Assembly (NCBI GenBank): GCA_907165135.1
Contig: OU015569.1
Span: 3,782,001 to 3,846,000 of the forward strand
Origin: Oikopleura dioica
Taxonomy: Eukaryota; Animalia; Chordata
Direction of reading: 5' to 3'
DNA length: 64,000 nt
The position numbers and the translations under genes are program-made. Position 1 is the stretch's first letter. The number at the start of each line of letters is the position of its first letter. Positions 5,701 to 56,200 of this stretch are shown here, one piece after another. The notes beneath the pieces were generated by a model. That model had not been told where the DNA came from. It saw nothing but the letters and a program-made list of their open reading frames with translations, and ran no database searches.

Positions 5701-6694
5701 ACCTGACGACACATACGACTTCATTCGCATACGCTTTGTCATTTATTTCGCAAGGCGAAAAATACCTTCACGAGTTCTTGATTTGTTGCACGCTGATTTG
5801 GGTTCGTCTGGGTACCTTTTACTTTCATTCTATCTTTATTTGCATGCACGCCTTAACAATTATTGATCCCTCAACAGTCGTAAATAGTTCTTACTAAAAA
5901 TATAACGAATAGGTTAAATAACAAGAAGTAGAAATGACGATGAATGATCTTCCGATGAAGTCGTTGTTGATCTCATTTACTTGGACGACAACAAGCGACA
6001 TTGACGCTAATAGCGATGACCAGGGAGTTGAGAAGAATGGATGGCTTCCCTGAAGTACTGGATTTGCGCTGCTTTATCGCACGTTTATCGGCAAAGCAGT
6101 ACTAACTACAGTAGCGCAGGGAGACCTGGAACTGACAAGCAGCTTTCAGCAATATTCGACATTCAATTTTGATAATCACCTGTCATACAGTGCGTTACTG
6201 ATTGATAGTACAGATTGATGATGATACTTTTCAGAATGAAAAATGCGACAAGCGATGGTTCTGTTTATTTCTGTTGGCGAAGTGATTCAAGACAGGAGTT
6301 CATCAATTGACTAGAAATTGAAAGCTTCTGTCGCTTTGTCTCTATAACATAACAAGTTGAAGGGCGATTCGTCAAGCTCAAGGAACATCGATTTATCTCC
6401 TCGTTACGAACAGAATTTATCGAGTAGACGTGATGATGCTTCTTTTTCGTCGTTTTTCTTTGACTCAATTCAAATTTTCGACTGTACCATCCAACCATTC
6501 GCAATTTTGCCAAAGGGCGTCTGATGGCCAAACCTTCGAGTTCGAATTTCCAACTTCGAAGTTAACTAAGGGGTGGCCTTGAAAACTCCAACCTTTTAGG
6601 ATTCATAAGCGATAATCCTTTCGATAGCTTTTTGATGGTGTTGTTATCGGCGCGCTAAAATGAATCTAGAAATGGTGCGCTCGCTGAAAATCTA

Positions 6695-6805
6695 CGGGGG
6701 TGTCTTTCAACAACGACCGGGCTGATTTGCATGATTGACCAATCACAGCACAGAATAATGCTTCATGATGGGAATCGCCCCGGTCGTTATTGAAAGATCC
6801 CCCCG
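6695..6805. mobile_element. 111-bp Tc1/mariner-type MITE, TA TSD
   Basis: TA|CGGGGGTGTCTTTCAACAACGACCGG ... CCGGTCGTTATTGAAAGATCCCCCCG|TA. The paralogous empty site (rc ~53405-53415) reads AAAATCTAGAAATC. Confidence 0.9.
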
Positions 6806-6893
6806 TAGAAATCGGCCTGCCCTGGATCAAACCATTTGCACGCTGCTCCCTGGTTGGCGCGCTAAGAGAAAAATTCTCTAGATTTGGGAGGTA

Positions 6894-8283
6894 ACGTACC
6901 CCCTAGCTCGCTCACATTTTGTGAACATTTTTCCCTTTTTCGCTTAGTTAAACTCCAACAAGACCCCCCTTGGTCGCTCGCTTTTTGTTACCAAGATCCG
7001 TTGGTCGCTTTCCTTCTTTTGCATTCTACGACCCCTTGTTCGCCCTCCTTGGTTTCGACGGCGCACCTTTGCTCGCCCGCCTTTCTCCGTCATTTATCCC
7101 TTGTTCGCTCCTGAAGCCCCGCGAGAACGCTTTATAACGCGTAGCTCATTTTCTTTTTCACTTTTAAAAGGCTTTTTAACTCGTAGAATGGTCTCAAAAT
7201 TCGATTTTCATGATTTTTTCCAAGCAAACTTATTTTTTTATGCTCTTTCACGTCCATTTTGTCAAATTTTCATATCTTATTAATAAGAAGAAATTTGGAC
7301 ACTCCATTTTAAGTAAACATAAGTACTCGAAATACATGGATTGAAACTTTTCGAGAGTTGCAAATTTTGATTAATTTTTCCGAGCTGAGCTGAGCTGAGC
7401 TGACCTGCGAAAAAATTTCTCTGAGCTGAGCTGAGCTGAGCTGGCCTACTTCGGAGGTTTCTGAGCTGAGCTGAGCTGAGCTGGCCTTTTTCAGAGGTCA
7501 TTAAGCTGAGCTGAGCTGATCAGACCTTTTGTTTAAGAGAGTGGAGCTGAGCTGAGCTGAGCGGACCCTAATTAGAGCTGAGCTGAGCTGAGCTGTTTTT
7601 TACTGTTTTTTGGTAGTAAAATTGTATTCAAATCATTGAGCTGAGCTGAGCTTAGCTAAGTGATAATCGTCTGAGCTGAGCTGAGCTGAGCAGAACAGAT
7701 CATGTTCGAAAATAATGGAGCTGAGCTGAGCTGAGCTGAGTGAAAATTGTCTGAGCTGAGCTGAGCAGATCAGATCATTTTCCAAAATCACTGAGCTGAG
7801 CGACTGCTCAGCTCACTCAGCTCAGCAAATTTGCAACTCTGGAACCAGTGTCAACATGAAGATTCGACTATTTTGAGTATAAATGTACATATAAAGTCAA
7901 ACTATCAAGTTTACGGCATAATACAGCGTTGCTACAAGATATAAAAATTGGACGCTTTAAAAAGAGGAAATGAAGTCTAGTTACTGTCAAAATATTCATG
8001 AAAATGAAAAATATAGTTCCCTATGAAAAGCTTGAGTCGAAAGTACAGTAAGAGCTGTAAGAGCGACCCAAGCCGAGCTAGGCTTTGGCGGTCTCCCGGC
8101 GAACAAGGGATAAATGGGTGAGGAGGAGCGAACAAGGGCGCGCGAGGTAAAAAGAAGGATGGCGACTAATGGAGCGCGCTGAAAGAAGAATGAGAGCGAG
8201 CAAGGGGACTTTGATAAAATTTAACTAAGCGAGCAAGGGAAAAATGCTCACAAAATGTGAGCGAGCTAGGGGGGGGGGTACGT
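6894..8283. mobile_element. 1390-bp non-autonomous TIR element, TA TSD, upstream of CenH3 copy 1
   Basis: TA|ACGTACCCCCTAGCTCGCTCACATTTTGTG ... CACAAAATGTGAGCGAGCTAGGGGGGGGGGTACGT|TA, with ~200-bp degenerate arms rich in CCCTTGNTCGCT. The paralogous empty site reads GGGAGGTATACAATT. Confidence 0.9.
7354..7840. mobile_element. Nested TIR element with clustered (GCTGA)n repeats
   Basis: 14-bp inverted ends AGAGTTGCAAATTT / AAATTTGCAACTCT. About a dozen clusters of 2-4 GCTGA units, flipping orientation near the right end (7805-7826). No clear TSD. Confidence 0.65.
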
Positions 8284-8299
8284 TATACAATTCTCTAGA

Positions 8300-8387
8300 T
8301 TTGGGAGGTATAAGAACCGGAGCGACGCAGCCAGGCCAATCAGTCGCAAACTTAACTCGCTCAGAAGAAAACTTTCAGAAATAAAAA
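8300..8387 (+). promoter_or_regulatory. Putative core promoter of CenH3 copy 1
   Basis: TATA-like GGTATAAGAA (~8306) and CCAAT (~8336) just upstream of the ATG. The block is conserved at 53230-53300 and 52200-52275. Confidence 0.5.
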
Positions 8388-10352
8388 ATGGCGCGACAAA
8401 AGTCTCCACCAAAGAAGAGGCCAGGAAAGCCAGGATCCAAAGTCAACAAAGAGATTATGGAACTCCAGAAAACAACCAACCTGCTCATGAGAAAGATGCC
8501 CTTCCAACGAGTGGTCCGAGAGGTAAATCTAGAATCTAGTCGAAACAGTAATACTTTTCCTTTAGGTTGTCAACGATCTTCGGCCTGGAAACGACTATCG
8601 ATGGCAGTCGCAGGCACTCCTCTGCCTCCAAGGTAATTTAGCACCGTCTTCTGTATTAAGGCTATAACCTCTCTTTTGGCCTCTCTGGAAAACGGACTTC
8701 CCTTGGTCGATTTCAAAAATTTAAAGGGCAAACATACTTGTTTTCTCCTAAAGAATTCAAAAAAGCCATCAAAAAATACTTTTCTCTGGTAATTTTTTGC
8801 TCTAGAATCATTCAAAAATCGCCGATCGGTTTTCCGAGAAAACCAGAAGCTCTGAGGTAAAATAAATCCGACAATGTTATTTAGTAAAGCATATTCTATG
8901 ATCCCTCTGGAAAAAATTTCAAGAAATTGTGTAAATTATGATTCTAGTTCTCTCTTCTTTTAAATCTCTTTTGTTTATAGACTGACGCTTGAGATCCGCG
9001 CAGCCAATCAAAGCGCGATGAATCGCTTGACTCACACGCTCGCCAACAGCGCTCTCTTTTTGGCCTGGAGGATAGCACTCCGCGCAGCGCGTCCACGCGC
9101 ATTTTTATCCTCAGGTGCTAGTACTAACATGGCCCTAGAATGAAAATTTGAAGAGATTTCGAAGATTTTTTCCATAGGGATTGTAGAGAAGGCTTTAATC
9201 TATTAATTGATCAAAAAAAAATCTACCTCTGTAATGGTAAAATTCTTCGGAAAACCGATCGGCGTTTTTTAAATGATTGTAAAGTCGAAATTTCAAAAGA
9301 AAAATTAATTTTTGATCGCATTTCTGAAATCTACGATAGATTTTGAGTATATGAGTCTTTTTAATTTTTGAAATCGACCAAGGGTAGTCGGTTTTCCGAA
9401 GAGGCCAAAAGAGAGGTTATAGCCTTAAGGATATACCCGATAAAATTGAACTTTTATAGCGCCGAAATGCGACGTAGGATCATTTTTATTATAAAAGCAA
9501 TTCTACCGTAAAATGCACGTAGAACTCAAATCTGGTACTTTTTTTATATTTTTTCATTAGAATTTTTCTCTTTAGAGCGATTTCAAATCTTACTCTCTCG
9601 ATTTCTCGAAATTTTTGGTATAAATCGGTCGAGATTTTTCGATAGAAAAGTTCTTTAGACCGTTATCTACAATCTTGATGGTTTACTTTTCCTTAATTCC
9701 GAAAAAAAACGATTCTAGAGCCATTTCACTGAGGGCTACTCAGCGCGTGAAAGCTCTACAAAGCGGCGCGCTGGGTGCTCGCTCACTCGACTCCTCTTTT
9801 CTGAGAGAAAGTGCGTGGTTGAGCGCACCGCTCTGATTGGTAGCACGCGAAAAAGCGCGCAGAGAAGAAAAACAAGTGTATAAAAGAGGAGAACACTAGA
9901 ATGAAAATTCGATCGGGTTAAAGAATTTGATCCCATCAATTTTGTAGGTTAGCATTATTCCAATACAGAACACGGGTCAGTTTTAGCGATTTAGTGGAAA
10001 AATTTCGAGAAATCGAGAGAGTTCGTTTTCAAATCGCTCTAGAGAGAAAAATTATGATGAAAATTTTTAAAAAAGTACCAGAATTGAATTTTACGCAAAA
10101 TTTTAGATAGGATTGCTTTTGAAATAAAAATGATCCGACTTCATATTTAGGCGCTATGAATGTTCGATTTTATCGGGTATATCCTTAATCTCTCAACTTA
10201 CAATTTCAGAAGCGACAGAGGCCTTCATTATCACAACTTATGAAGTCGCCAACCTGTTCGCCCTTCACTCCAAGCGCGTCACCATCATGAAGAAAGACTT
10301 GGACCTTGTCAAAGCTGTCGCGCAAGTCAACCTCAATGGAATCAAAGAGTAA
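8388..10352 (+). CDS. CENPA: Centromeric histone H3 variant (CenH3/CENP-A-like), copy 1; exons 8388-8522, 8566-8632, 10210-10352; 114 aa
   Basis: Histone-fold H3 motifs LLMRKMPFQRVVRE, QSQALLCLQEA and HSKRVTIMKKD. CenH3 hallmarks: loop 1 two residues longer than H3, W at the H3 F84 position (DYRWQS), A at the T107 position, unrelated short N-tail. GT-AG introns give an intact frame. Confidence 0.85.
8660..9424. mobile_element. Foldback MITE A (765 bp), TTAA TSD, GG...CC ends (Kolobok-like), in CenH3 intron 2
   Basis: TTAA|GGCTATAACCTCTCTTTTGGCCTC ... GAGGCCAAAAGAGAGGTTATAGCC|TTAA, with ~288-bp imperfect arms. Absent from the 48-nt paralogous intron (52930-52977). Confidence 0.9.
9429..10184. 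mobile_element. Foldback MITE B (756 bp), TTAA TSD, GG...CC ends (Kolobok-like), abutting MITE A
   Basis: TTAA|GGATATACCCGATAAAA ... TTTTATCGGGTATATCC|TTAA, with ~288-bp imperfect arms. Absent from the paralogous intron. Confidence 0.9.
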
Positions 10353-12603
10353 ATTTCCCCACTCCCCGTTTTCGAATCCTGCCTCACCTCCCCGTGCAAA
10401 TTTCTTCCCAAACCAACCAATTGCGATCATTTGTACATTAACATCGGAATAAAATTGAAAAAAACTATATCCTAATGTCTTTTCTCTTGTAATAACTTTC
10501 CCATCGGAAACCAAATAAAATATACAAAAAAAATAAATATCGTCTTCACTGGCAAGATCTTTTCGCAGGAGTTAAAATCGATCTACGATCTTGCAAAGCA
10601 CCAAAATGCTCGAGTCAGAATGGCTCATGATCTCGGCGGAGAATCGATACTGGCATAATAATAATAAATATGCCGGCTATTTTTCACCCTTTTAGAAAAT
10701 AAAAATTTGTTTAGGTTGTTTCCTGTTTATCAGGAAACACACTTACTAATAGTAATAATTTAGTAAGAGGGAAAGAGTTAGCTTGGAAGAGTTACGAGCG
10801 CTTTGAGTACAGATTCTACTATTTGCTAAAAGGGGAAATGAGTTTTAGCGGCTGACCAATCGTCGGGGCTCTTTTTTGAAAACGAAAATAATTGATCCGC
10901 GACGGGTTATTTCGTCGTTTTTTCAGCGAGGACTGCGAAAAGCGGGAAAGAGTCAAGTGTAAGAAGTGAAGAGTGAAATCCAGAGAGTACACAAGTGCAC
11001 AAAAAGAAGAGAATAATAAAACCGGCGCCGCGGGGAGAGAGTGCGGAGAATCAGGAAACCTCCAAACATTCAGAGAACTGGAAATCAACAAGGATTCACG
11101 CAGCCCGACACATGTAATTCCTTCATAGAGCCTCTCCAGTTTCTTTTGGTAAGTAAATATCACAAAAATGACATTTTTCTCAAAAAAAAAATTGGGAATT
11201 AAACGAACTCGAACGAGTGAACTTGATTAGTAATTAGTTCCCGTACTGGGTGGCCACTATTTCTACACTAATAACTTCGAAAACGACTGATTGAACGGGC
11301 GAATTCCTTAAAACTCGCCAATGTCGATCTTGTCAATTGAGAATGTTGGCTTTCGTCAATGACTCTGCGTGAGAAAAGATCGCGCTTTATTCTGATTGAG
11401 AATAATGGGATCTTTAAATTCATGCTTTCCCAGAAAAGAAGAATTCGCTGAATTGATGGCCCTGGACGTAATCCCCGAGGGATGACTCCGTGACTTAGAG
11501 TTCGCTGTGAACTTTTTACAGCTCTGCAAACAGCGACTGACTCATCAGTCCTCTATTTTTTTAATGCGCATTGTTGTTGTTTTTTGTTATTGTCAATAAC
11601 TTATTGAGAGTCATTATTTGTTAATCTGCCAGTAACACTAATAAAAGTAAATCTGAGTAAATAAGAAAGTCTGATAATTATGATGTCAGATTGTTGACGC
11701 GGACGAGGGTGTAAATGAAAGAAATTGACATTTCGAAATCGATTCTACCTATGTTCGTTCGTGATGTAAGCCACTGTAAGAATGCAGTGGCGAGATACTC
11801 AAAGCATGAATATGGCCCATAACAAACTTCGTTTTCGCCGGCATGGGAAAGTAATTTAGGTGAATTCGGGAGCCTTTAATCATCTCTTTTACGGAATTTT
11901 TAACGCTCATTTTCGGAAAATCGTAATTTGCCGTCATCGCTCGCCTCCTTTCAGTATTGATTTTGGACCGGAAAAAAAGTGAGAACACTTCAATCACCAA
12001 AAATTTAGTTAGAAAAGGGCTAGTCTTTAAATATATCTCCGCTCATCTGTGAAATGCGCCTCTCTGGCAGATTCAGAAATAGCAACATTATTTATGAATA
12101 TTCACATACACCAAAAAGGCCGTCAATTTCCAATTGATTTTTATTTTTTTTTCTCATAAGGGCTAGACGTAAAGTTTCTCCAAAGTTATTTTTCGCTTGT
12201 TTTGCGTGAAGAGATCAATGCAGAAGGACACGATCGACGCTACAATTTATTGATTTATTGTTGGTAAATTTTCGTTAAACTTATTCGACTTCCGTTTTTT
12301 GTATTGACTGTTATGGGCAGAGTTGTTAACTCACGTGTCTGTCCATGTCTCAAGAAATAAATAGGGGCGCGAATTAGACGTCTAAAAATACGAGGAACTG
12401 GTCCTCGGCAGATATCAGTGCATTGAAAATCTACGAATTGCTGATTATTTCTCAAGTTTAAAGTGCGCCACCCTCAGAGTAGCTATAAGAAAATCGACAA
12501 GCTCTAGGAATAGAAATTATCAGAGAAAATAAAAGTTCTACTTTTGTCCATGGGAGGTACAACCCAACTAAACCAAAAATTTAGCTTTTATAATGCAGTC
12601 TTT

Positions 12604-29446: not shown

Positions 29447-32088
29447 TTATTGGAACTGTGAAGATATTTCATCAAGCGATTTTCCTCGTGTTTCGGGTAA
29501 AAAGATAAACTCGAAAATGGCAACAATTGCGGTCAAGATTGCGAATAGCCAGTAAGTCCAATCCTGGCCCAGCTCGGCGAACATTTGCTGGAGAAAGAAG
29601 GTCAAAAGAAACGATGCGCCCCAGTTAACAGTTCCACATAGTTAGGGTTTCTCACGGGAAAATGGTAGTTATCACTTTTTTCTTACAATTTCACTGTAGG
29701 CATAATTTGACCCGCTGATTCCAAAAATACAAAAATCAGAGGCGCTGGTCAAGGTTTTGGTGGTGCGGCGCGCGCTGTCTTGGCGCATTTGGTGCAAGGG
29801 TGATTTTTCAGTGAAAATTTCCCAAAATAGTTTTCTATAGGTTTTTGAACATGGTGAGCCCGAAAGTAATAGTTATTTTGGCTAAATAAGAGTTATTATT
29901 AAACATCAGTATCTTACAACATATGCGACTCTGATTTCTCTGGAAAAAATAAGAATAGTCTGCTTTGACTTCTTTGTTAAATCTCTGGAGAAGTTTGGAT
30001 TCCTTCTCCCGAAGGAATACGCTCTTTTACTTTTGTTAATCTTGACCCTTGTTGCAAACCGATGTTCAGAAACTAATTGACAATTAGCTTTTTTCGGAAT
30101 TTTCGATGGTAAGTCACATTATTTACAATGAAATTATCATATTTGAATCGAAAATCCCCCAATTATTGCATCGAACCACTTTATTTCGTCACCTTCCACA
30201 GAAAGGTTCGGACTGCTCTCCGGGGGAGTGAGTAAATATGCGCGTTTTCAGCCCAGGCGGTGACCCCGTGCGCGACTCCAGCGCCCGCGCAACGCCAGAA
30301 AGTTCTAGTTAAATGCAGATTTCCGGGTGTCCTACCAGATCCTGCTATTCCAAAATTTGAGAGGTGATTACTAAGTGCCTAAAGTTTATCATATTCGAAA
30401 ATGAAGAGTGTGCTAAAGTGTGATCAGTGTTTGGGAGGCAATTTTCCAAAAAAATTCCCCCATTTTCGCCTTTTTTTAACATTAACTTAAATTATAATTC
30501 TTAATTATTAATGTACACCTTCGATTTGGTACTATCTGTGAGTTTCATGAAAAAAATATAGACAATTAGTGAAGATAAAAATCGCGGTGAGAAGGCGTTC
30601 CGAGCCCCGCGCGCTCCCGTGAAAAACCCTACACATAGTGATGAGCAAGTCCCCTTTGCTCTGTTGTCGAAGAACTCGCCGATCAACAGCCACGGAACAG
30701 GACCTAACGTAAAAATCAGGCTAAATATAGAGTGAAAACGTTTACCTTCTCCAAGAGCAAAGGATAAACTAAACAAGACAATTGAAGTCAATCCGACGTA
30801 TTCCATCCATGAGGGACCGACTCCTCTCATGTTGTAATTTTCATAAACTCCAAAAACTGTCAAGCAAACAATCATTCCTATAGCGGAGGTGAAGAGCCAA
30901 AATCGACGGCCGGCTTTATCCATCAAAGAGGACGAGATAACAGTCCCGATAACTTGAGATAGACCAAGCAAGATCGAGGCTAAGTTAGCGTCTGTCATTC
31001 CAGCAGCGGCAAAGATCGTTTCAGCGTAGAACAAAATGCAGTTGATTCCGCAAAGCTGCTGACCCGCATGAATGACTTGACAAAAAATGTATTTTTAAAA
31101 TTTACAACTTTATCTACCGAGCATGATAAACAGAGGAGTTCGCAGATGTCTCGTTGATAGAATTTCTCGGATCGATGCATTCCCGTGTTGAGTCTGGAGC
31201 AGAACGGACTCTTCGATCTCCTCTATCTCCTTTGCAATGAGCGGACTGGATAAATCTTGCGCCCGAAGATACGCTAAATTTCGGCGCGCAGATATTCTGT
31301 CTTTGCGCATAAGGAGCCATCTAGGAGAGCTTGGCACCATTATGAACACGAGAACAGCGCCGACTGCTGTAAAACTGAGCGAGTAAAGCGCCGCATGCTG
31401 CCAAACAAGCCATCGTCCTGCCAAATAGCCGAGCAAAATTCCAACAGTGACTATTGAAGGAGAATAGCTTAAAAAAACTAACTTGACAACGGCTCACCCA
31501 TGAATTGGAATCCGGCACCGAAAAGTCCTCGCACATCAGGAGTAGATACTTCTCCAATGTAAGTAGGACACGCAATACTCATAACACCACAGGCGATACC
31601 GGTCTTGAGGCGACCGACAATGGCCGTCTCCATCGACGAAATATCCATGCAAAGAAGCATCCACCCAATGGCGAACAGTGAGCAGCCTACAAGCATGATG
31701 CACTTTCGTCCAAACTTCTCACAGGCTGAAAAGTAGTCACTGGAGCTTATAAAAATGGTATAAGACTTACCTGGACCAGCAGCTAGTGAGCCTACGGCAG
31801 CACCGATAGTGATAATACTTCCAAACCATGAAATTTGACTAGGCGTACTTGTTATGTGAGGATCCTTTTGAATTGATGGAATTGCGCCAGATGAATAACT
31901 CAGCGTTAAACCGATTATTATGGGGCACATATAAGACGCCAGGATCACTTTCTAATTATTTTAAAATTATTTACACCCTCTGAAGGTTTTCTTACGTAAA
32001 TATTCGTCTTTCTTGTTGGAGCACCATGCGAAGAGAGTACATCATCTGCTGGATTCTCATTATCAACAAGAATCTCTTGATCGCCCAT
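29447..32088 (-). CDS. MFS sugar porter, GLUT6/GLUT8 (SLC2A6/8, Tret1-like), interrupted by an exonic insertion
   Basis: EKFGRK, PTYIGEVSTPDVRGLFG, PSSPRWLL, QQLCGINCILFY, MDKAGRR, GPVPWLLIGE and PETRGKSLDEI. N-terminal EILV dileucine-like motif. Confidence 0.9.
29643..30631. mobile_element. 989-bp hAT-like non-autonomous element with an 8-bp TSD, inside a coding exon
   Basis: CACATAGT|TAGGGTTTCTCACGGGA ... TCCCGTGAAAAACCCTA|CACATAGT (TSDs at 29635-29642 and 30632-30639). Confidence 0.92.
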
Positions 32089-49700: not shown

Positions 49701-50590
49701 TATGAACTGTATGTACACTGGAGATGCTCTCTGGCGGAATCACGAATTTTCAGGCACACGGAGCGAAGAGTACGTTGCGAATGGAAGAATCAGTTGTGGC
49801 GGAGCGTATTGAGCACTTGATTGGTTTGGTGAAGAAGTCGGTTTGCCTCACGGAACACCCCTCGCTTTCTCTCGTCGCACCGATCTTGGAAGTATTCCTT
49901 AAAGGCATCTTCTACCGACGCTAGGCGCACAAAGCGATCTACCTTGAGCGCTTCGGAAAACCTCTTCGAGAAGCGAACGAATTCTCGTTTCTGCAAGTCG
50001 AGCCTGTCAGTGCTCGCACGGCTTTTCTGGCGATTGATGTCAATCTTATTGTTCAGTGCGTCGAGAAGCATTCGAATGTTTGAAGCAATGTCTTTGATCG
50101 TCTGCAAATTAAATTTAAAAAAGTCGTTTCAACTAGCAAATTCCTCACTTGAAGAAATATGGGTCGGTCTGGAATGACTCGTGGTATCGAGGAAAGAATC
50201 TTTTTCAGGTTGTCCGCTCGAGACTGTATCAACGGAGCTAGCTCGCTGAGGAAACGATGACTGATTTGCTCGAGATAAGAGGCTTTGGTTTACCTGTCAT
50301 TTGAAAGCTGAAACTCGCGCAAGTGTTGACTCGAAGTAGCTAGAATAGTTGCCTCGTAAGGATACGGTGTTCCGTCCGTCTGTTTGTGGAAGGAACGCAT
50401 GAAGTCTTCTGAGAAACCTAGTCACTCGATAAAAAATAATCAACAATTTTCTCATGTTACCTGGAGCATGTTTCTCTGCTTTCAAAAAGGTTTGGATGAG
50501 GGCCTTCTCTGCCTGCTGATCTTTTCCACAAATCCCACGAATCTTCGGAAGAATCCCGTACAGAAGAGCCGCCGATGTTTCGTTTGTCAT
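46782..50590 (-). CDS. Large coiled-coil protein with a C-terminal RING finger (putative E3 ligase; TTC3/DZIP3-like architecture, tentative)
   Basis: Terminal CRIC...LACTHMICTVCAKDW...CPFC RING, with long heptad exons upstream. Many open minus-strand exons extend to 50590, so this may be more than one gene. Confidence 0.6.
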
Positions 50591-51491
50591 TTTTCCTCTC
50601 TAAACAAGATCTTCTTTAAATTTCTCGTTAAATCAATCTGCCTCGAATCGATCGGATCAACTTTAAAAATTTTCAATAATGTAAAAAAAGAAATCTATTT
50701 TTCTCTATCTTCACAAATTCTTTCGATTCGGGTGGCGAATCTTAATAGAAAATGAGCTTCGCCAGTCTTCTTAGGAATTGTCTCCGAAATTGTATGCAAA
50801 TCGTAGGAACGCGGAAAGTAATTGCGCGATGAGTCACCGCGAAGAGCGCCCGCGCCGCTGATTTTTTTCATTCAAATAACTTCAAGTTGAAGTCTTCAAC
50901 AGTAACTTGATAATTCACAACGGCTCTATTTGGACCATGAGTGAGTTTACTAAATCCCACCTGTTACTGCTTATTCTTGGGAATGATCACGAGAACCGTT
51001 TTTTTTCTGTTCTCCCTTAGTGATGAAAATTGATTTAATCATGAGCCAAGATTTTTGCATTCAAAGACGATCGATGTTGTTTTTGTAATGTTTATTAAAT
51101 TCCAATAATAAAATTGGTTAAACAGTAGTTCCAATAAATTTAATCGATTAAAGGAGTTTTTCAGTTATTTCTAGAACAGAGAATCTAACGATACAATAAT
51201 ATCAACGGTCGAGGAGGTCGGCATACAAAAAGTTTCAGTAATTTCCAGTAGTAAGGATTTTTCAGTGAAATTAAATGAGATAAAAAAAGAGAATTGTATC
51301 TACGAGGCGCGAGGAAAGATTCACAAAGAGTTCCTAAAAGGCTAAAAAGAATACTTGACGAAGGAGAGAAGAAATGTGCTTAGTGCCTAACAGGTTTAAC
51401 AAGCATAAACTGAACTAATCAAGAGCAGGCTAATTGAGAGTTCGCTCGAAGCGAGAACTTCTTCCATTTGAAGCTGACTATCTGCTCCTTG

Positions 51492-52188
51492 TTACTCTTC
51501 GGACTTTTTCTGCTGACGCTTGATGAAGAATTTCTGGGTTCCTAAAATCAAAGTTAGTTATCAATCCCTATCGTGAAATGTTTTCTGACTTACCTCCGTA
51601 TTTGAAGAGTTTAGTGGCAGTCTTCTTGAGATTTCCGAAAGCTACCTCAGGTTCAGAGGGGAAGAATGCGGAGTAGTCCTTCTTGACTTCATCGAGGAAG
51701 AGCTTGGTCATCCACTGCTTGTCTCGTCCGTTGAGAGAGTTTGGCCGCTTCGCCATCTCCTCGATTTTCTCCTCGGTGACTGCTCCTCGCTTGATGAGCT
51801 TTTTCTCGGCGTCGGCAAGAGAAAGAGACATTCTTGGACGATTGTCCACTGTCTCAGGCTTCTTGTCGAAAATCACGATCCCGGGCGCGCCTAGAAATTT
51901 TATTAATCAGAACATCTTTATCAATAATAGATTATGAAGACCGAGCCTCTTTATCGTAGGATAAATTATGATTTAAAATTTACCTGGGACTCGCGAGAAG
52001 AGTCGTGCTGCCTTGGACTTGAGGCTAGATGGATTGGGTTCGTCAGAGAAGAATGCAGAGTAGTTTCGCTTGACTTCATCTACGAAGACGGTCGCTATCG
52101 CATTAGCTCCAGCCCTATCGAGTTGCTCTCTGGTCATTCGTCCTACTTTGATGAGCCCTTCTTCGGCTTCGGTCTTGGAGAGTTTCAT
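51492..52188 (-). CDS. Orphan ~180-aa protein made of two homologous helical repeats (three exons)
   Basis: Repeat 1 is LSKTEAEEGLIKVGRMTREQL...FVDEVKRNYSAFFSDEP...LKSKAARLF; repeat 2 is LSLADAEKKLIKRGAVTEEKI...FLDEVKKDYSAFFPSEP...LKKTATKLF. Both introns are GT-AG and fall at equivalent positions just after each repeat. Confidence 0.8.
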
Positions 52189-52199
52189 CGTTGGAAGGT

Positions 52200-52503
52200 A
52201 AAAAAAGGAAGTTTTTCTTGAAGAATCAAGTTTGCGACTGACTGAATTGAGCGGGTCACTCGGCTTCTTATACCTTCTCGAATCTAGGGAAATTTTATCA
52301 AGCGCGCCAACCAGGGAGCAGCATGCGAATGGTTTGATCCAGAGGCGGCCGATTGATCCAGAGTCAGCGAGCGCGCCATTTTTAGATTCATCTTTGCGCG
52401 TCGATAACAGCGCCATCAAAAGCGCTCTCGAAAAGATTATCGCGTAAAAATCCAAACGGTGGAGTTTTCAACCTTCGAAGTTCGTTTCGCGAGCATACCC
52501 GTG
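52200..52503 (-). promoter_or_regulatory. Paralogous copy of the CenH3 upstream/promoter block in front of the orphan gene
   Basis: Collinear with 53230-53538, sharing e.g. TCAAGTTTGCGACTGAC, AGCGCGCCAACCAGGGAGCAGC, ATGGTTTGATCCAG, ATCAAAAGCGCTCTCGAAAAGATTATCGCGTA and GGTGGAGTTTTCAACCTTCG. Confidence 0.85.
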
Positions 52504-52786
52504 TGAGATTATAAGCCATTCTGACTCGAGCATTCTGGTGCTTTGGAATGTCATAGATAGATCCTAACTCCTGCGAAAAGATCTTGCCAGTGAAGACGAT
52601 ATATATTTTTTTTGTATATTTTGTTTGGTTTCCGATGGGAAAGTTATTGCAAGAGAAAAGACATTAGAATATAGTTTTTTTCAATTTTATTCCGATGTTA
52701 ATGTACAAATGATCGCAATTGGTTGGTTTGGGGAGAAATTTGCACGGGGAGGTGAGGCAGGATTCGAAAACGGGGAGTGGGGAAAT

Positions 52787-53222
52787 TTATTTTTTGATTC
52801 CATTGAGGTTGAATTGCGCGACAGCTTTGACAAGGTCCAAGTCTTTCTTCATGATGGTGACGCGCTTGGAGTGAAGGGCGTACAGATTGGCGACTTCAAA
52901 GGTTGTAATAATGAAGGCCTCTGTCGCTTCTGAAATTGTAAGTTGAGAGATTAATACAGAAGATGGTGCTAAATTACCTTGGAGGCAGAGGAGTGCCTGC
53001 GACTGCCATCGATAGTCGTTTCCAGGGCGAAGATCGTTGACAACCTAAAGGAAAATTATTACTGTCTCGACTAGATTCTAGATTTACCTCTCGGACCACT
53101 CGTTGGAAGGGCATCTTTCTCATGAGCAGGTTCGTTGATTTCTGGAGTTCCATAATCTCTTTGTTGACTTTGGATCCTGGCTTTGCTGGCCTCTTCTTTG
53201 GTGGGGACTTCTGTCTCGCCAT
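52787..53222 (-). CDS. CENPA: Centromeric histone H3 variant (CenH3/CENP-A-like), copy 2; exons 53222-53088, 53044-52978, 52929-52787; 114 aa
   Basis: Same exon lengths (135/67/143 nt) and same CenH3 hallmarks as copy 1. Introns are 43 and 48 nt. Six amino-acid differences from copy 1. Confidence 0.85.
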
Positions 53223-56200
53223 TTTTTAAAAAGTATTTTCTTCTGAGCGTGTCAAGTTTGCGACTGACCAACCTGGCTGGGTCGCTCAGGTTCTTATACC
53301 TCCCAAATCTAGAGAATTGTATACCTCCCAAATCTAGAGAATCTTCTTCTTAGCGCGCCAACCAGGGAGCAGCGTGCAAATGGTTTGATCCAGGGCAGGC
53401 CGATTTCTAGATTTTCCGCGAGCGCACCATTTCTAGATTCATTTTTGCGCGCCGATAACAGCGCTATCAAAAGCGCTCTCGAAAAGATTATCGCGTATAA
53501 ATCCGAACGGTGGAGTTTTCAACCTTCGGAGTTCGTTTTTTCGATGGTTACTAATCATTGGTTAGGCTATTACCGGCAATTTTCGAATGAAGTCTCGCTA
53601 CGTTTGCTCAATCGAAGCAATCATGGAGGAGAACAAACTTTGCCATAAAGAATCACCAAAAGCTTAAGCTAAAGTCCATGTATTTTATAAAAGTTTTAAA
53701 GCTTTGAAGCTCCATTGAGGTAAATTTTTCTCATGCGAAAAAGCGGCTTTCGTTAAATACCAAGTGAGGCAGGTGTTGCGTATTTAGAACACGCGTGTTT
53801 GTAGATTTTCTTTATCAGCATGTTGCTTTCTGGAGAAAGTCTTCGCCGAAGCTGGAATTCGAAGATGCATCTTCTTGTAGACTGGATACGCGATAAGGGT
53901 AGAGAAGTCGCAATCGATAATTGTCCGAGTTCCGATTTTCTCACAGCGAAGAACTGCTGCCCCGATAAGCGATGATATCCGCATTCACTCTTTCGATACT
54001 TGATCCTAAACTGACAGGAGCGAGTTCAAATAACCTTTCCGTTGATCACAAATGCGTTTCGCAAGCATACCCGTGTTACTTGCAATTCAAGAGTTCGATC
54101 GTGGATCTTTATTGTTTCGTTTCCCGAGTAGTACGCCGAGCAATAAAAAAATTGGGCTTACTTATTCATCACGTGAATAAATTAAATGTACGGCAGTGCA
54201 CGAGTTAAATATTTAAATTTGACACTAAATGACCTTCTTCCAACGCTTTAAAGGTAAAAAGTATTTCGAATTATTTCGAATATAAAAATCATTCTTTAGA
54301 CTCGTTACTTTTTTTTAAATAATCGATCAGTTAATCAAAATTCCTAAAAGAAGGGATTCTTCATGAGTGATATTTTTAGCTTTTCTGTTCCTTGTCATTT
54401 TGGCAGTCACTCTCGGAAGGTGCAAATTGTCTGAGCGGGGTCTCATCTGGCACACAGCTCTAACCCTATTAGCCCCTCAGATGTCCCCCTGACGGCACCT
54501 TTCCGGAAAGCAAATATTTTCAACCTCATTTTCTAGCGTTACATAAGATAGTTTTTCATCATCGATATTTTAGCAACAAATGTTAGACGAAGTTCAACGT
54601 CTGCACTGACAATTCAATGAAGCTTTAGTTAGCATATTAAAAATTCAACCCCGATAAAAATTAAAATGAACTTATTCATTGTTTTATCCAAATGTTTTTA
54701 GGTAAAAAGATTATTCCCTGTCCACGTCTTTAATTCTTAATAAGCCTTTGCGAAAATAATGTAAATAGGTTACAAACAGACAAACAATTGAATTGTTCGA
54801 AAGAAAAATCAAGAATTTCCGTTTTTACAAGAGATAGAGTGGCGCAGTGAAAAGGCGCGCCACCGAGTGGAGCGGTAGCGCAAGAAAAAAAACGCGCAAC
54901 CGTCTGGTGCGCGCTCATCGCTGACAAGAATTCAACTCAGAACTTAACCCTCCTATATTTTCCTTTATTGCTGACGATTGTTAGATAAGAGATTCACTGC
55001 TTTACGCCCTCAAGAAGTAAACTTTGATTGTTTGGGAATTAGAATCCACTGTTTTGTCATAACAGGTATTGAACACTTCCATTAAAAGAACAGTTACAGT
55101 TGTTGTTCCCGAATCAAATGGACATAAAAGTTCGACCCTAGAAAATAGCTTTTTGAAAAACAAAAAAACGCGATCGATTTCATTAGAAATGTTGGATGCA
55201 TGAAAAATAAAAGAGCAGAAGAGATTATATGCAGCATATAATACGCGCATCTCGTATTTCTATGTTTGTCCTCGCATAGACTAAATACAATTCTTAATTA
55301 ATTATTCTCGTTTAGCGGTCGTCGGATTGAGCAGTATACCTGCTCTGAGACCGATGATTTTTTCGATTAGTCGCGCATTTCGTTTTTACTTTATTTTCGA
55401 AGCGAGAGAACATACTCCTGGGGATTATTTTGAAACGCGGCCGGGGTCGCCAATATTTATATCCGAGCTAGGCCGTTTTCTAGAGACAACAGCAGAAAAA
55501 CTCCAGTAAGTGAGTAGTCCTAAATCCAGTGTTTTTGCGTGAATAATTAATGAATTTGAATGAAATTAATTCTGGCCAAGTTCGGATGTTAGCAAATGCA
55601 TGTTAAAGTTATAGTACTCTACTTCTTCGCCAATCGCTTATTAATGCCCGGCCCTTAATTAAAGATTGAGTTTGGCTTGTGTATTAATCCTAAAGAGAGG
55701 CTTCAGAACGACATGGTGCGAAGCAGATTACAAATTTTAATCTGGCGGGAATTCGCTAAAAAATTTACGCATCTCGATGCGATGGGCATCTTCTCACGTG
55801 CCGGCCAAAATACTAGAAATGCACTGAAAGAAGGAAGAGGCTGCTACTAGTTCAACGCCAAGCATAATTGCACGAAGCGATGTTGCTAATCTCGTAAATG
55901 TCGACGGGCCCACAATCTAATATTCTGACCCATCAAGCTTTTCTCAAAAGCTCATTAAAATTGAACATTACTAATCTACTTTTGGGAATCCCAATTACAA
56001 TTATCGTCTTCTGCAACAATTAGACACAGCTCAATCAACGTGGCTTTAAACGTCAGAAATACGGGAGTTGAACTGCTCTAGAACACGCAGCTCAGGCGAG
56101 AAACACCTTTAGCGGTTCTGTTTTGGAAGACTGGAATAGTAAATGAGAGCGGATCGTAGAAGTCGGTCCTCTGTAGCGGGAAAGAGGAGGAATACAGAGC

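Follow-up and report, generated by a model that had tools for sequence, protein, structure and literature searches.

A promoter module shared by an Oikopleura-restricted two-repeat gene and X-linked CenH3 duplicates, and the probable direction of its copying

The X-specific region of the Okinawa Oikopleura dioica assembly OKI2018_I69 (contig OU015569.1; PMC8008620) harbours a small gene of two homologous repeats, g14349 (full name Oidioi.mRNA.OKI2018_I69.XSR.g14349; NCBI protein CAG5095813.1, P0019), which is annotated but uncharacterised and is called the orphan below. The sequence upstream of it, here termed module P, recurs in front of two X-linked genes for the centromeric histone CenH3. 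The best overall explanation, held with reasonable confidence, is that module P originally served the orphan as its promoter, a copy of which a young CenH3 duplicate later acquired. The more notable result would then lie beside the orphan: judged from sequence, the assembly carries three intact CenH3 genes, two of them X-linked and furnished with an apparently captured, TCTAGA-enriched promoter. The features discussed are listed in Table 1, with positions counted in the window, that is, the whole 64-kb stretch of DNA that was analysed.

Table 1. Features of the orphan gene, module P and the X-linked CenH3 genes in the window.
Feature	Position	Strand	Details
Orphan exon 1	51984..52188	-	ATG 52188-52186; repeat 1; 68 aa plus first base of the split Gly codon; residues 1-68 of P0019
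Orphan intron 1	51891..51983	-	GT..AG, phase 1; position and continuing frame kept in L010
Orphan exon 2	51594..51890	-	linker (APGIVIFDKKPETVDNRPR) and repeat 2
Orphan intron 2	51542..51593	-	GT..AG, phase 1; same repeat-relative position as intron 1
Orphan exon 3, coding part	51493..51541	-	15-residue basic tail TQKFFIKRQQKKSEE; stop TAA 51495-51493
Orphan promoter and 5'UTR (module P)	52189..52504	-	76-81% kept in orthologues L012 and L014
Orphan CCTAGA	52288-52283	-	
Orphan TATAAG	52272-52267	-	
Orphan TCAGTC, initiator-like	52245-52236	-	
Orphan E2F-like TTGGCGCGC	52310-52302	-	
Orphan GGCGCGC	52377-52371	-	
Orphan GGATCAAACCA	52340-52330	-	
Orphan Yn-AG	52225-52216	-	
Module P boundary ACACGGGTATGCT	52504-52492	-	13 bases
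Putatively captured module P before CenH3-2	53223..53545	-	24-nt tandem duplication; four TCTAGA (53437, 53411, 53338, 53313)
CenH3-2 TATAAG	53298-53293	-	
CenH3-2 TCAGTC	53267-53262	-	
Distal extension of the duplicated upstream segment	53546..54076	-	53702-53540 homologous to L001 orphan upstream
CenH3-2 (X-linked duplicate)	52787..53222	-	exons 53222-53088, 53044-52979, 52930-52787
CenH3-1 (secondary inverted copy, P + CenH3)	6545..10634	+	exons 8388-8522, 8566-8631, 10209-10352
CenH3-1 promoter pieces	6545-6693, 6807-6893, 8284-8387	+	
CenH3-1 inserted elements	6694-6806, 6894-8283, 8660-10184		

The orphan gene and its repeat family

The orphan consists of three exons on the minus strand and encodes 183 aa arranged as two homologous helical repeats of ~75 aa. 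The model derived from the exons matches the database protein residue for residue over its full length. The repeats share 42% identity and a common core, F-x-D-E-V-K-x-x-Y-S-A-F-F-x-x-E-P; at the DNA level, a repeat search detects the cores as a 52-nt echo of 77%. The earlier note had described two homologous repeats, each followed by an intron at the same position, and both introns are indeed in phase 1 and split a Gly codon directly past the last helix of the repeat. The computed protein has a mass of 20.7 kDa and a pI of 9.7, is soluble, and has neither a signal peptide nor cysteine. A single AATAAA is located downstream of the gene (51096-51091). The annotated gene order is cadherin, a 114-aa histone, g14349 and a PDCD10-like gene, then RING, EMC7, RPL4 and others, and the coordinates agree with the placement of the orphan directly downstream of CenH3 copy 2 on the same strand. 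The gene id g14349 was not found in the literature.

Two other readings of the locus were rejected. That the two Met-initiated repeats are separate genes is ruled out by the conserved phase-1 intron with its continuing frame (OKI, L010) and by the database protein, which covers both repeats. A derivation of the coding sequence from a histone or CenH3 is ruled out by zero similarity in blastn and Pfam; Pfam is empty for the orphan's coding sequence, which is thus as unrelated to histones as previously claimed. Between OKI and L001, a 95%-identical relative, the orphan differs by 13 synonymous and 7 non-synonymous codon differences (pN/pS 0.20), and pN/pS reaches 0.40 between OKI and L010; by these ratios, selection on the gene is purifying but relaxed. 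The orphan is a real, conserved, Oikopleura-restricted gene.

A profile search with the repeat against 1.84 billion cluster representatives yielded 13 matches. Marine assemblies in ENA or Logan supplied 11 of these, the orphan's own cluster representative included, all of them as short reading frames. In ten of the short-frame relatives the repeat starts at residue 1, in two others at residues 29 and 34, and in most of them the reading runs into a splice donor after G-G. A second profile search added further relatives of the same kind, none of them a named protein. Six-frame HMM scans of the contigs found two tandem repeats wherever the contig was long enough (L002, L003, L005). Among the peptides of JGI metagenomes and metatranscriptomes, a pattern scan recovered no true relative of the family, and the 36 loci returned by a scan with a degenerate 29-nt motif all proved to be chance matches in hmmsearch.

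Pfam gave no match to either repeat exon or to the full protein, and scattered single matches alone (E>=0.003) when 18 aligned family members were searched. The best NCBIfam match (E=0.019) falls far below its cut-off, and a PDB profile search with the repeat stayed at E>=0.48. AlphaFold2, run on the 18-sequence alignment, predicts a four-helix domain with moderate confidence (pLDDT 71); a single-sequence model of exon 2 (pLDDT 53) was left out of the fold searches. Searches with the alignment-based model remained at noise level in Foldseek on PDB (E>=4.9), VIA-align (Z<=4.3; 48,161 chains) and the ESM Atlas (TM<=0.46), and feature searches of the Atlas for the repeat returned noise-level rows only. 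Since the fold model reaches no more than moderate confidence, its failure to match a known fold says little about novelty. Judged by these searches of Pfam, NCBIfam, PDB and the Atlas, the repeat is an Oikopleura-restricted domain family without recognisable relatives, in line with the earlier statement that it is not a known domain.

The remaining two of the 13 matches are bacterial DUF2680/SHOCT-like repeat proteins (P0009, P0010; PF10925, PF22746), and they are confined to the first helix-turn-helix. The likeness lies in the first two helices of the orphan repeat, with the pattern L-[IV]-x-x-G-x-[IL]-T-x-E-[QK]. It differs from a family relationship in that 30-48 of the 79 profile positions are matched and that the scores are inflated by the five to six repeats of the bacterial proteins. 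P0010 scores 118.8 bits on PF10925, and PF10925 and PF22746 produced no match to the orphan protein or to the 18 aligned family members. Convergence is the more likely source of this likeness.

The family also has more distant members. Two-repeat representatives (L005 1881-2487; L003 1-673; L013 557-781) share metagenome samples with closer orthologues, and in many of the distant members a Cys is conserved and the motif appears in an F-F-F-P-E form. Their distribution suggests that the members either form a small family of several genes or come from more than one Oikopleura species. Module P is absent upstream of the distant member on L013. Elsewhere in the window, at 29838-30026 (-), a reading frame (...RFNKEVKADYSYFF...) inside a hAT-like/MITE insertion in a sugar-transporter exon matches the core motif of the orphan's domain family, with an HMM E-value of 7e-5 for a small search space; a paralogue may have left this fragment through capture or decay.

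Module P and the CenH3 genes

The sequence 52189-52520 (-) is collinear with 53223-53560 (-) at a mean identity of 85% with one 24-nt indel. Its blastn core (52269-52487 versus 53320-53538) reaches 87% with E=4e-66, and the repeat search recovers 187 nt at 89%. The ~300 bp upstream of the orphan are thus a collinear paralogue of the sequence upstream of CenH3 copy 2, as the earlier note had stated, and its remark that both ATGs lie at a similar distance from a TATA-like element is also sound, the distances being 84 nt for the orphan (ATG 52188) and 76 nt for CenH3-2 (ATG 53222). The window contains three copies of module P only, one each for the orphan, CenH3-2 and CenH3-1. In every copy, the TATA box is located 29-33 bp upstream of the TCAGTC initiator-like element. 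TCAGTCGCAAACTTGA is perfectly conserved among the copies, and the E2F-like TTGGCGCGC, GGCGCGC and GGATCAAACCA boxes are common to them; the last of these recurs before a distant family member on L005. The boundary sequence ACACGGGTATGCT is repeated at 54076-54064, upstream of CenH3-2.

The CenH3 sequence (...NDLRPGNDYRWQSQ...) has extra loop residues and the Trp, and Pfam Histone matches fall on exons 1 and 3 of CenH3-2. A CenH3 combines an H3-type histone fold with a divergent N-tail and carries an extended loop 1 as well as a Trp in place of H3 Phe84, and centromere localisation has been shown only for the single OdCenH3 of the Bergen lineage (PMC3156773). CenH3-2 ends in an AATAAA at 52691-52686 and a 3' flank that extends to 52505. 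The secondary copy, CenH3-1, has no orphan gene behind it, and its reading frame is intact despite several insertions. These insertions are foldback/MITE-like, two of them in the promoter and a stacked pair in intron 2, and one of the promoter insertions lies at the TA of a TCTAGA motif, which it splits. The third gene, g7130 (P0026; L015 6001-6436), was located on chr2 with CenH3 exon 1 as the query. The X-linked copies differ from it with a pN/pS of 0.17-0.22 (0.17 for CenH3-2), and the ratio is 0.31 in exon 1 versus 0.05 in the fold exons; on this measure, the three copies are under purifying selection.

Orphan orthologues from other lineages (L010-L012, L014) keep a promoter block of ~250 bp, which is 81% identical to OKI in L012 and 76% in L014. 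The exons are 65-74% identical between OKI and L010/L012, and the introns and 3'UTR fall to ~50%, i.e. they are unalignable. The orphan promoter is therefore conserved above its protein.

This conservation bears on the way in which the orphan is transcribed. It could be the downstream cistron of a CenH3-2/orphan operon, or its transcript could be trans-spliced to the spliced leader (SL) at the Yn-AG ~25 nt before the ATG, and either arrangement would fit both directions of promoter copying. All orphan and P-CenH3 copies have a pyrimidine tract followed by AG at this position, and trans-splicing occurs nearby, at the next gene downstream. Four RNA runs, assigned by species label only, were mapped at 90% likeness and gave 0, 0, 1 and 4 reads on 50300-55300; at 90-99% likeness they apparently stem from a diverged O. 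dioica lineage. None of these few reads falls on the orphan or CenH3, so they are uninformative on the expression of either. Reads do join an SL end at 50593 on the minus strand, 3 nt upstream of the PDCD10-like ATG; their overhang reads as the O. dioica spliced-leader end in reverse complement, which independently confirms the species, and the PDCD10-like gene is thus SL trans-spliced. Operons are common in O. dioica (PMC6389100). However, the orphan's TATA box, initiator-like element and upstream boxes are conserved above the coding exons, which is hard to explain if they are unused. Moreover, the CenH3-2 poly(A) signal lies ~500 bp before the orphan ATG, a distance far exceeding typical operon spacing. 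We consider transcription as a downstream cistron or through trans-splicing unlikely.

Direction of the promoter copying

The earlier note had proposed that the orphan captured its promoter from CenH3. Module P would then be a CenH3 promoter that was duplicated in front of an unrelated orphan, which thereby gained the CenH3 expression programme. The promoters are clearly paralogous and the genes stand in tandem, and the CenH3-2 3' flank ends exactly where the orphan module begins (junction 52505/52504), as a tandem duplication of P-CenH3 would give. However, four lines of evidence speak against this direction, beginning with the autosomal CenH3 gene. It aligns with CenH3-2 only between a point ~12 bp ahead of the ATG and 52641, a short way beyond the poly(A) signal, with identities of 87-95% in the exons, 82-91% in the introns and 92% in the 3'UTR. 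Upstream, the chr2 gene is unrelated to module P (39%). It is flanked by a PKK-domain kinase gene upstream and a convergent HMG-box gene downstream, and the same two genes also flank CenH3 on L017-L019, contigs of a much more distant lineage whose CenH3 protein has 65% identity over the N-terminal 46 residues. Because these neighbours recur, chr2 is the ancestral CenH3 locus and the X-linked copies are derived. On the JGI contig L017 (118-4450), the PKK kinase and CenH3 genes are intron-free with their 680-nt spacer kept, and the sequence looks transcript-derived; the ancestral CenH3 may be co-transcribed with the PKK kinase.

Module P, in turn, accompanies the orphan in two or more other lineages, in which the introns have diverged from OKI to saturation. 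The contigs of these lineages end too early to reveal any CenH3 copy upstream of their orphan genes. The junction itself is legible on the Tara contig L016. There, a P-type CenH3 gene retains the orphan 5'UTR through ...CCAACGAT(A) and then continues with a chr2-like AGAAAT..ATG. The stretch ...CCTCCAACGAT(A) corresponds to the orphan start-codon position with the ATG changed to ATA, and AGAAAT..ATG matches the 12 bases preceding the chr2 CenH3 start.

Divergence also bears on the timing. pS amounts to 0.26 between the X-linked and chr2 CenH3 genes and to 0.42 between the OKI and L010 orphans, and the X-linked CenH3 copy would be young because its introns are still 82-91% identical to those of chr2. 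With a bootstrap of 53 and quartet-informative sites split 3/1/5, the promoter tree gives no date on its own, so that the timing rests on synonymous and intron divergence, a dating that gene conversion between the CenH3 copies could distort. For two local alignments, one of them underlying this tree, the three promoter pieces of CenH3-1 were joined end to end and the inserted elements left out.

Taken together, chr2 synteny, the orphan-linked module, the L016 junction and the divergence values argue that a young DNA-level duplicate of CenH3 took a copy of the orphan's promoter and not the reverse, a direction in which we have good confidence. An origin of the module at CenH3 is correspondingly improbable. 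The earlier reading is thus upheld as to the shared promoter, the orphan status and the unrecognised repeat, and probably reversed as to the direction of capture. With the direction falls its functional argument, which had made the orphan a candidate centromere or chromatin factor by way of the CenH3 programme: if the CenH3 duplicate inherited the orphan's expression programme, this argument is removed. It is scarcely credible that module P is a self-spreading or gene-converting promoter cassette copied between unrelated genes and owned by neither, since it lacks terminal repeats and target-site duplications and all copies found belong to this orphan or to CenH3, even if three copies do occur in one 64-kb window.

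The favoured history, in which the promoter passed from the orphan to CenH3, would have begun with an orphan that owned an upstream module of ~0.3-0.85 kb, comprising the TATA box, the TCAGTC initiator-like element, the E2F-like GGCGCGC and an ancestral TCTAGA ~45 bp before the predicted start. A duplicate of the autosomal CenH3 gene, with its ends at about -12 and a little beyond the poly(A) signal, would have landed at the orphan start codon, and at least 0.5 kb of the orphan's upstream sequence would have been duplicated at the same time, yielding the order P-CenH3-P-orphan. The simplest course of events would be a tandem duplication of the orphan upstream region during which the CenH3 body entered at the junction, much as template switching would bring about. 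Later, P-CenH3 would have been copied in inverted orientation to a site 45 kb away without the orphan (CenH3-1). Since then, the CenH3 duplicates would have run on the borrowed promoter and gained extra TCTAGA motifs. L001 has the same order of CenH3 3'UTR, P and orphan, and its orphan upstream region keeps ~160 bp matching 53702-53540, a stretch lost in OKI. Because of these ~160 bp and the recurrence of ACACGGGTATGCT upstream of CenH3-2, the duplicated segment would measure at least 0.5 kb and possibly ~0.85 kb, and OKI and L001 would later have undergone different deletions.

Duplication-mediated promoter capture, which gives rise to chimeric duplicates, is a known route by which new genes acquire their regulation. 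The proposed history resembles it in that a duplicated gene body is fused to the 5' region of another gene, with breakpoints in the 5'UTR or at the start codon. It differs in that the donor promoter would have been duplicated too, leaving both genes with a copy, and in that the recipient is an essential-class histone variant.

Expected expression and significance

TATA promoters of O. dioica are sharp and tissue-specific (Danks et al. 2018, PMC6389100). In the same species, more than 70% of testis-specific genes carry TCTAGA at about -44, the published male-germline core element; E2F1 sites have also been treated (PMC6389100). In L014 and in all P-CenH3 copies (CenH3-2, CenH3-1, L016), the core site 45-48 bp upstream of the predicted start reads TCTAGA; it reads CCTAGA in the OKI and L001 orphans and TGTGGG in L012. 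Measured to the initiator A of a predicted TSS, the distance is 48 bp for the TCTAGA of CenH3-2 and 45 bp for the CCTAGA of the OKI orphan. In total, TCTAGA occurs four times in the CenH3-2 promoter, twice in that of the L014 orphan, and neither in the OKI orphan promoter nor upstream of the chr2 CenH3 gene. The P-CenH3 copies owe their extra motifs to two point changes and the 24-nt tandem duplication. On L016 (1-277), the TCTAGAAATGGTGCGCTCGCTGAAAATCTA segment of the P-type CenH3 promoter is tandemly duplicated once more, which raises its number of TCTAGA motifs above that of the OKI copies.

The position of the element is close to the published arrangement of spermatogenic promoters, 45-48 bp before the predicted initiator versus a median of 44 bp. 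Unlike those promoters, module P combines the element with a canonical TATA box; the OKI orphan reads CCTAGA at this site, and the start sites here are predicted, whereas the published data come from the Bergen lineage (PMC6389100). Male-germline activity was probably a property of the ancestral module P. It seems to be strengthened in the CenH3 duplicates and partly lost from the orphan, and the prediction of male-germline expression is weakened for the orphan because its core TCTAGA has decayed to CCTAGA in OKI and to TGTGGG in L012. The orphan and CenH3-2 may well be co-regulated. The orphan itself is most likely a fast-evolving small protein with a sharp, tissue-specific promoter, possibly expressed in the male germline, and it probably acts through the binding of proteins or nucleic acids by its predicted helical domains. 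Its function would not follow from that of CenH3. More speculatively, the X-linked CenH3 pair, rewired onto the orphan's germline promoter, would supply male-germline centromeric histones, and the orphan, co-regulated with them, might be their paralogue-specific partner or a sperm chromatin protein; we regard this scenario as doubtful.

Duplication of CenH3 is rare in animals, and we know of no case described in tunicates. Duplicates of Cid (CenH3) with germline specialisation have been reported from Drosophila and mosquitoes (PMC5435080, PMC8200288, PMC7306699). The O. dioica genes resemble them in having several intact paralogues under purifying selection with a faster-changing N-terminal tail, and in promoter features that hint at male-germline use. 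They differ in belonging to a chordate, in being young (pS 0.26) and located in the X-specific region, and in a regulation apparently copied from a neighbour.

By the favoured history, two X-linked CenH3 copies have come to carry the promoter of an unrelated neighbour, with a junction that can be read at base level. They would represent a clean, datable example of an essential histone variant acquiring a new expression programme. The orphan's promoter, for its part, gives no reason to regard the gene as a centromere factor, and the orphan stays a conserved, lineage-restricted two-domain protein. Male-germline centromeric histones, if true, would be the first for chordates, and the locus offers a case in which it can be tested whether centromeric histones have specialised for the germline in the vertebrates' sister group.
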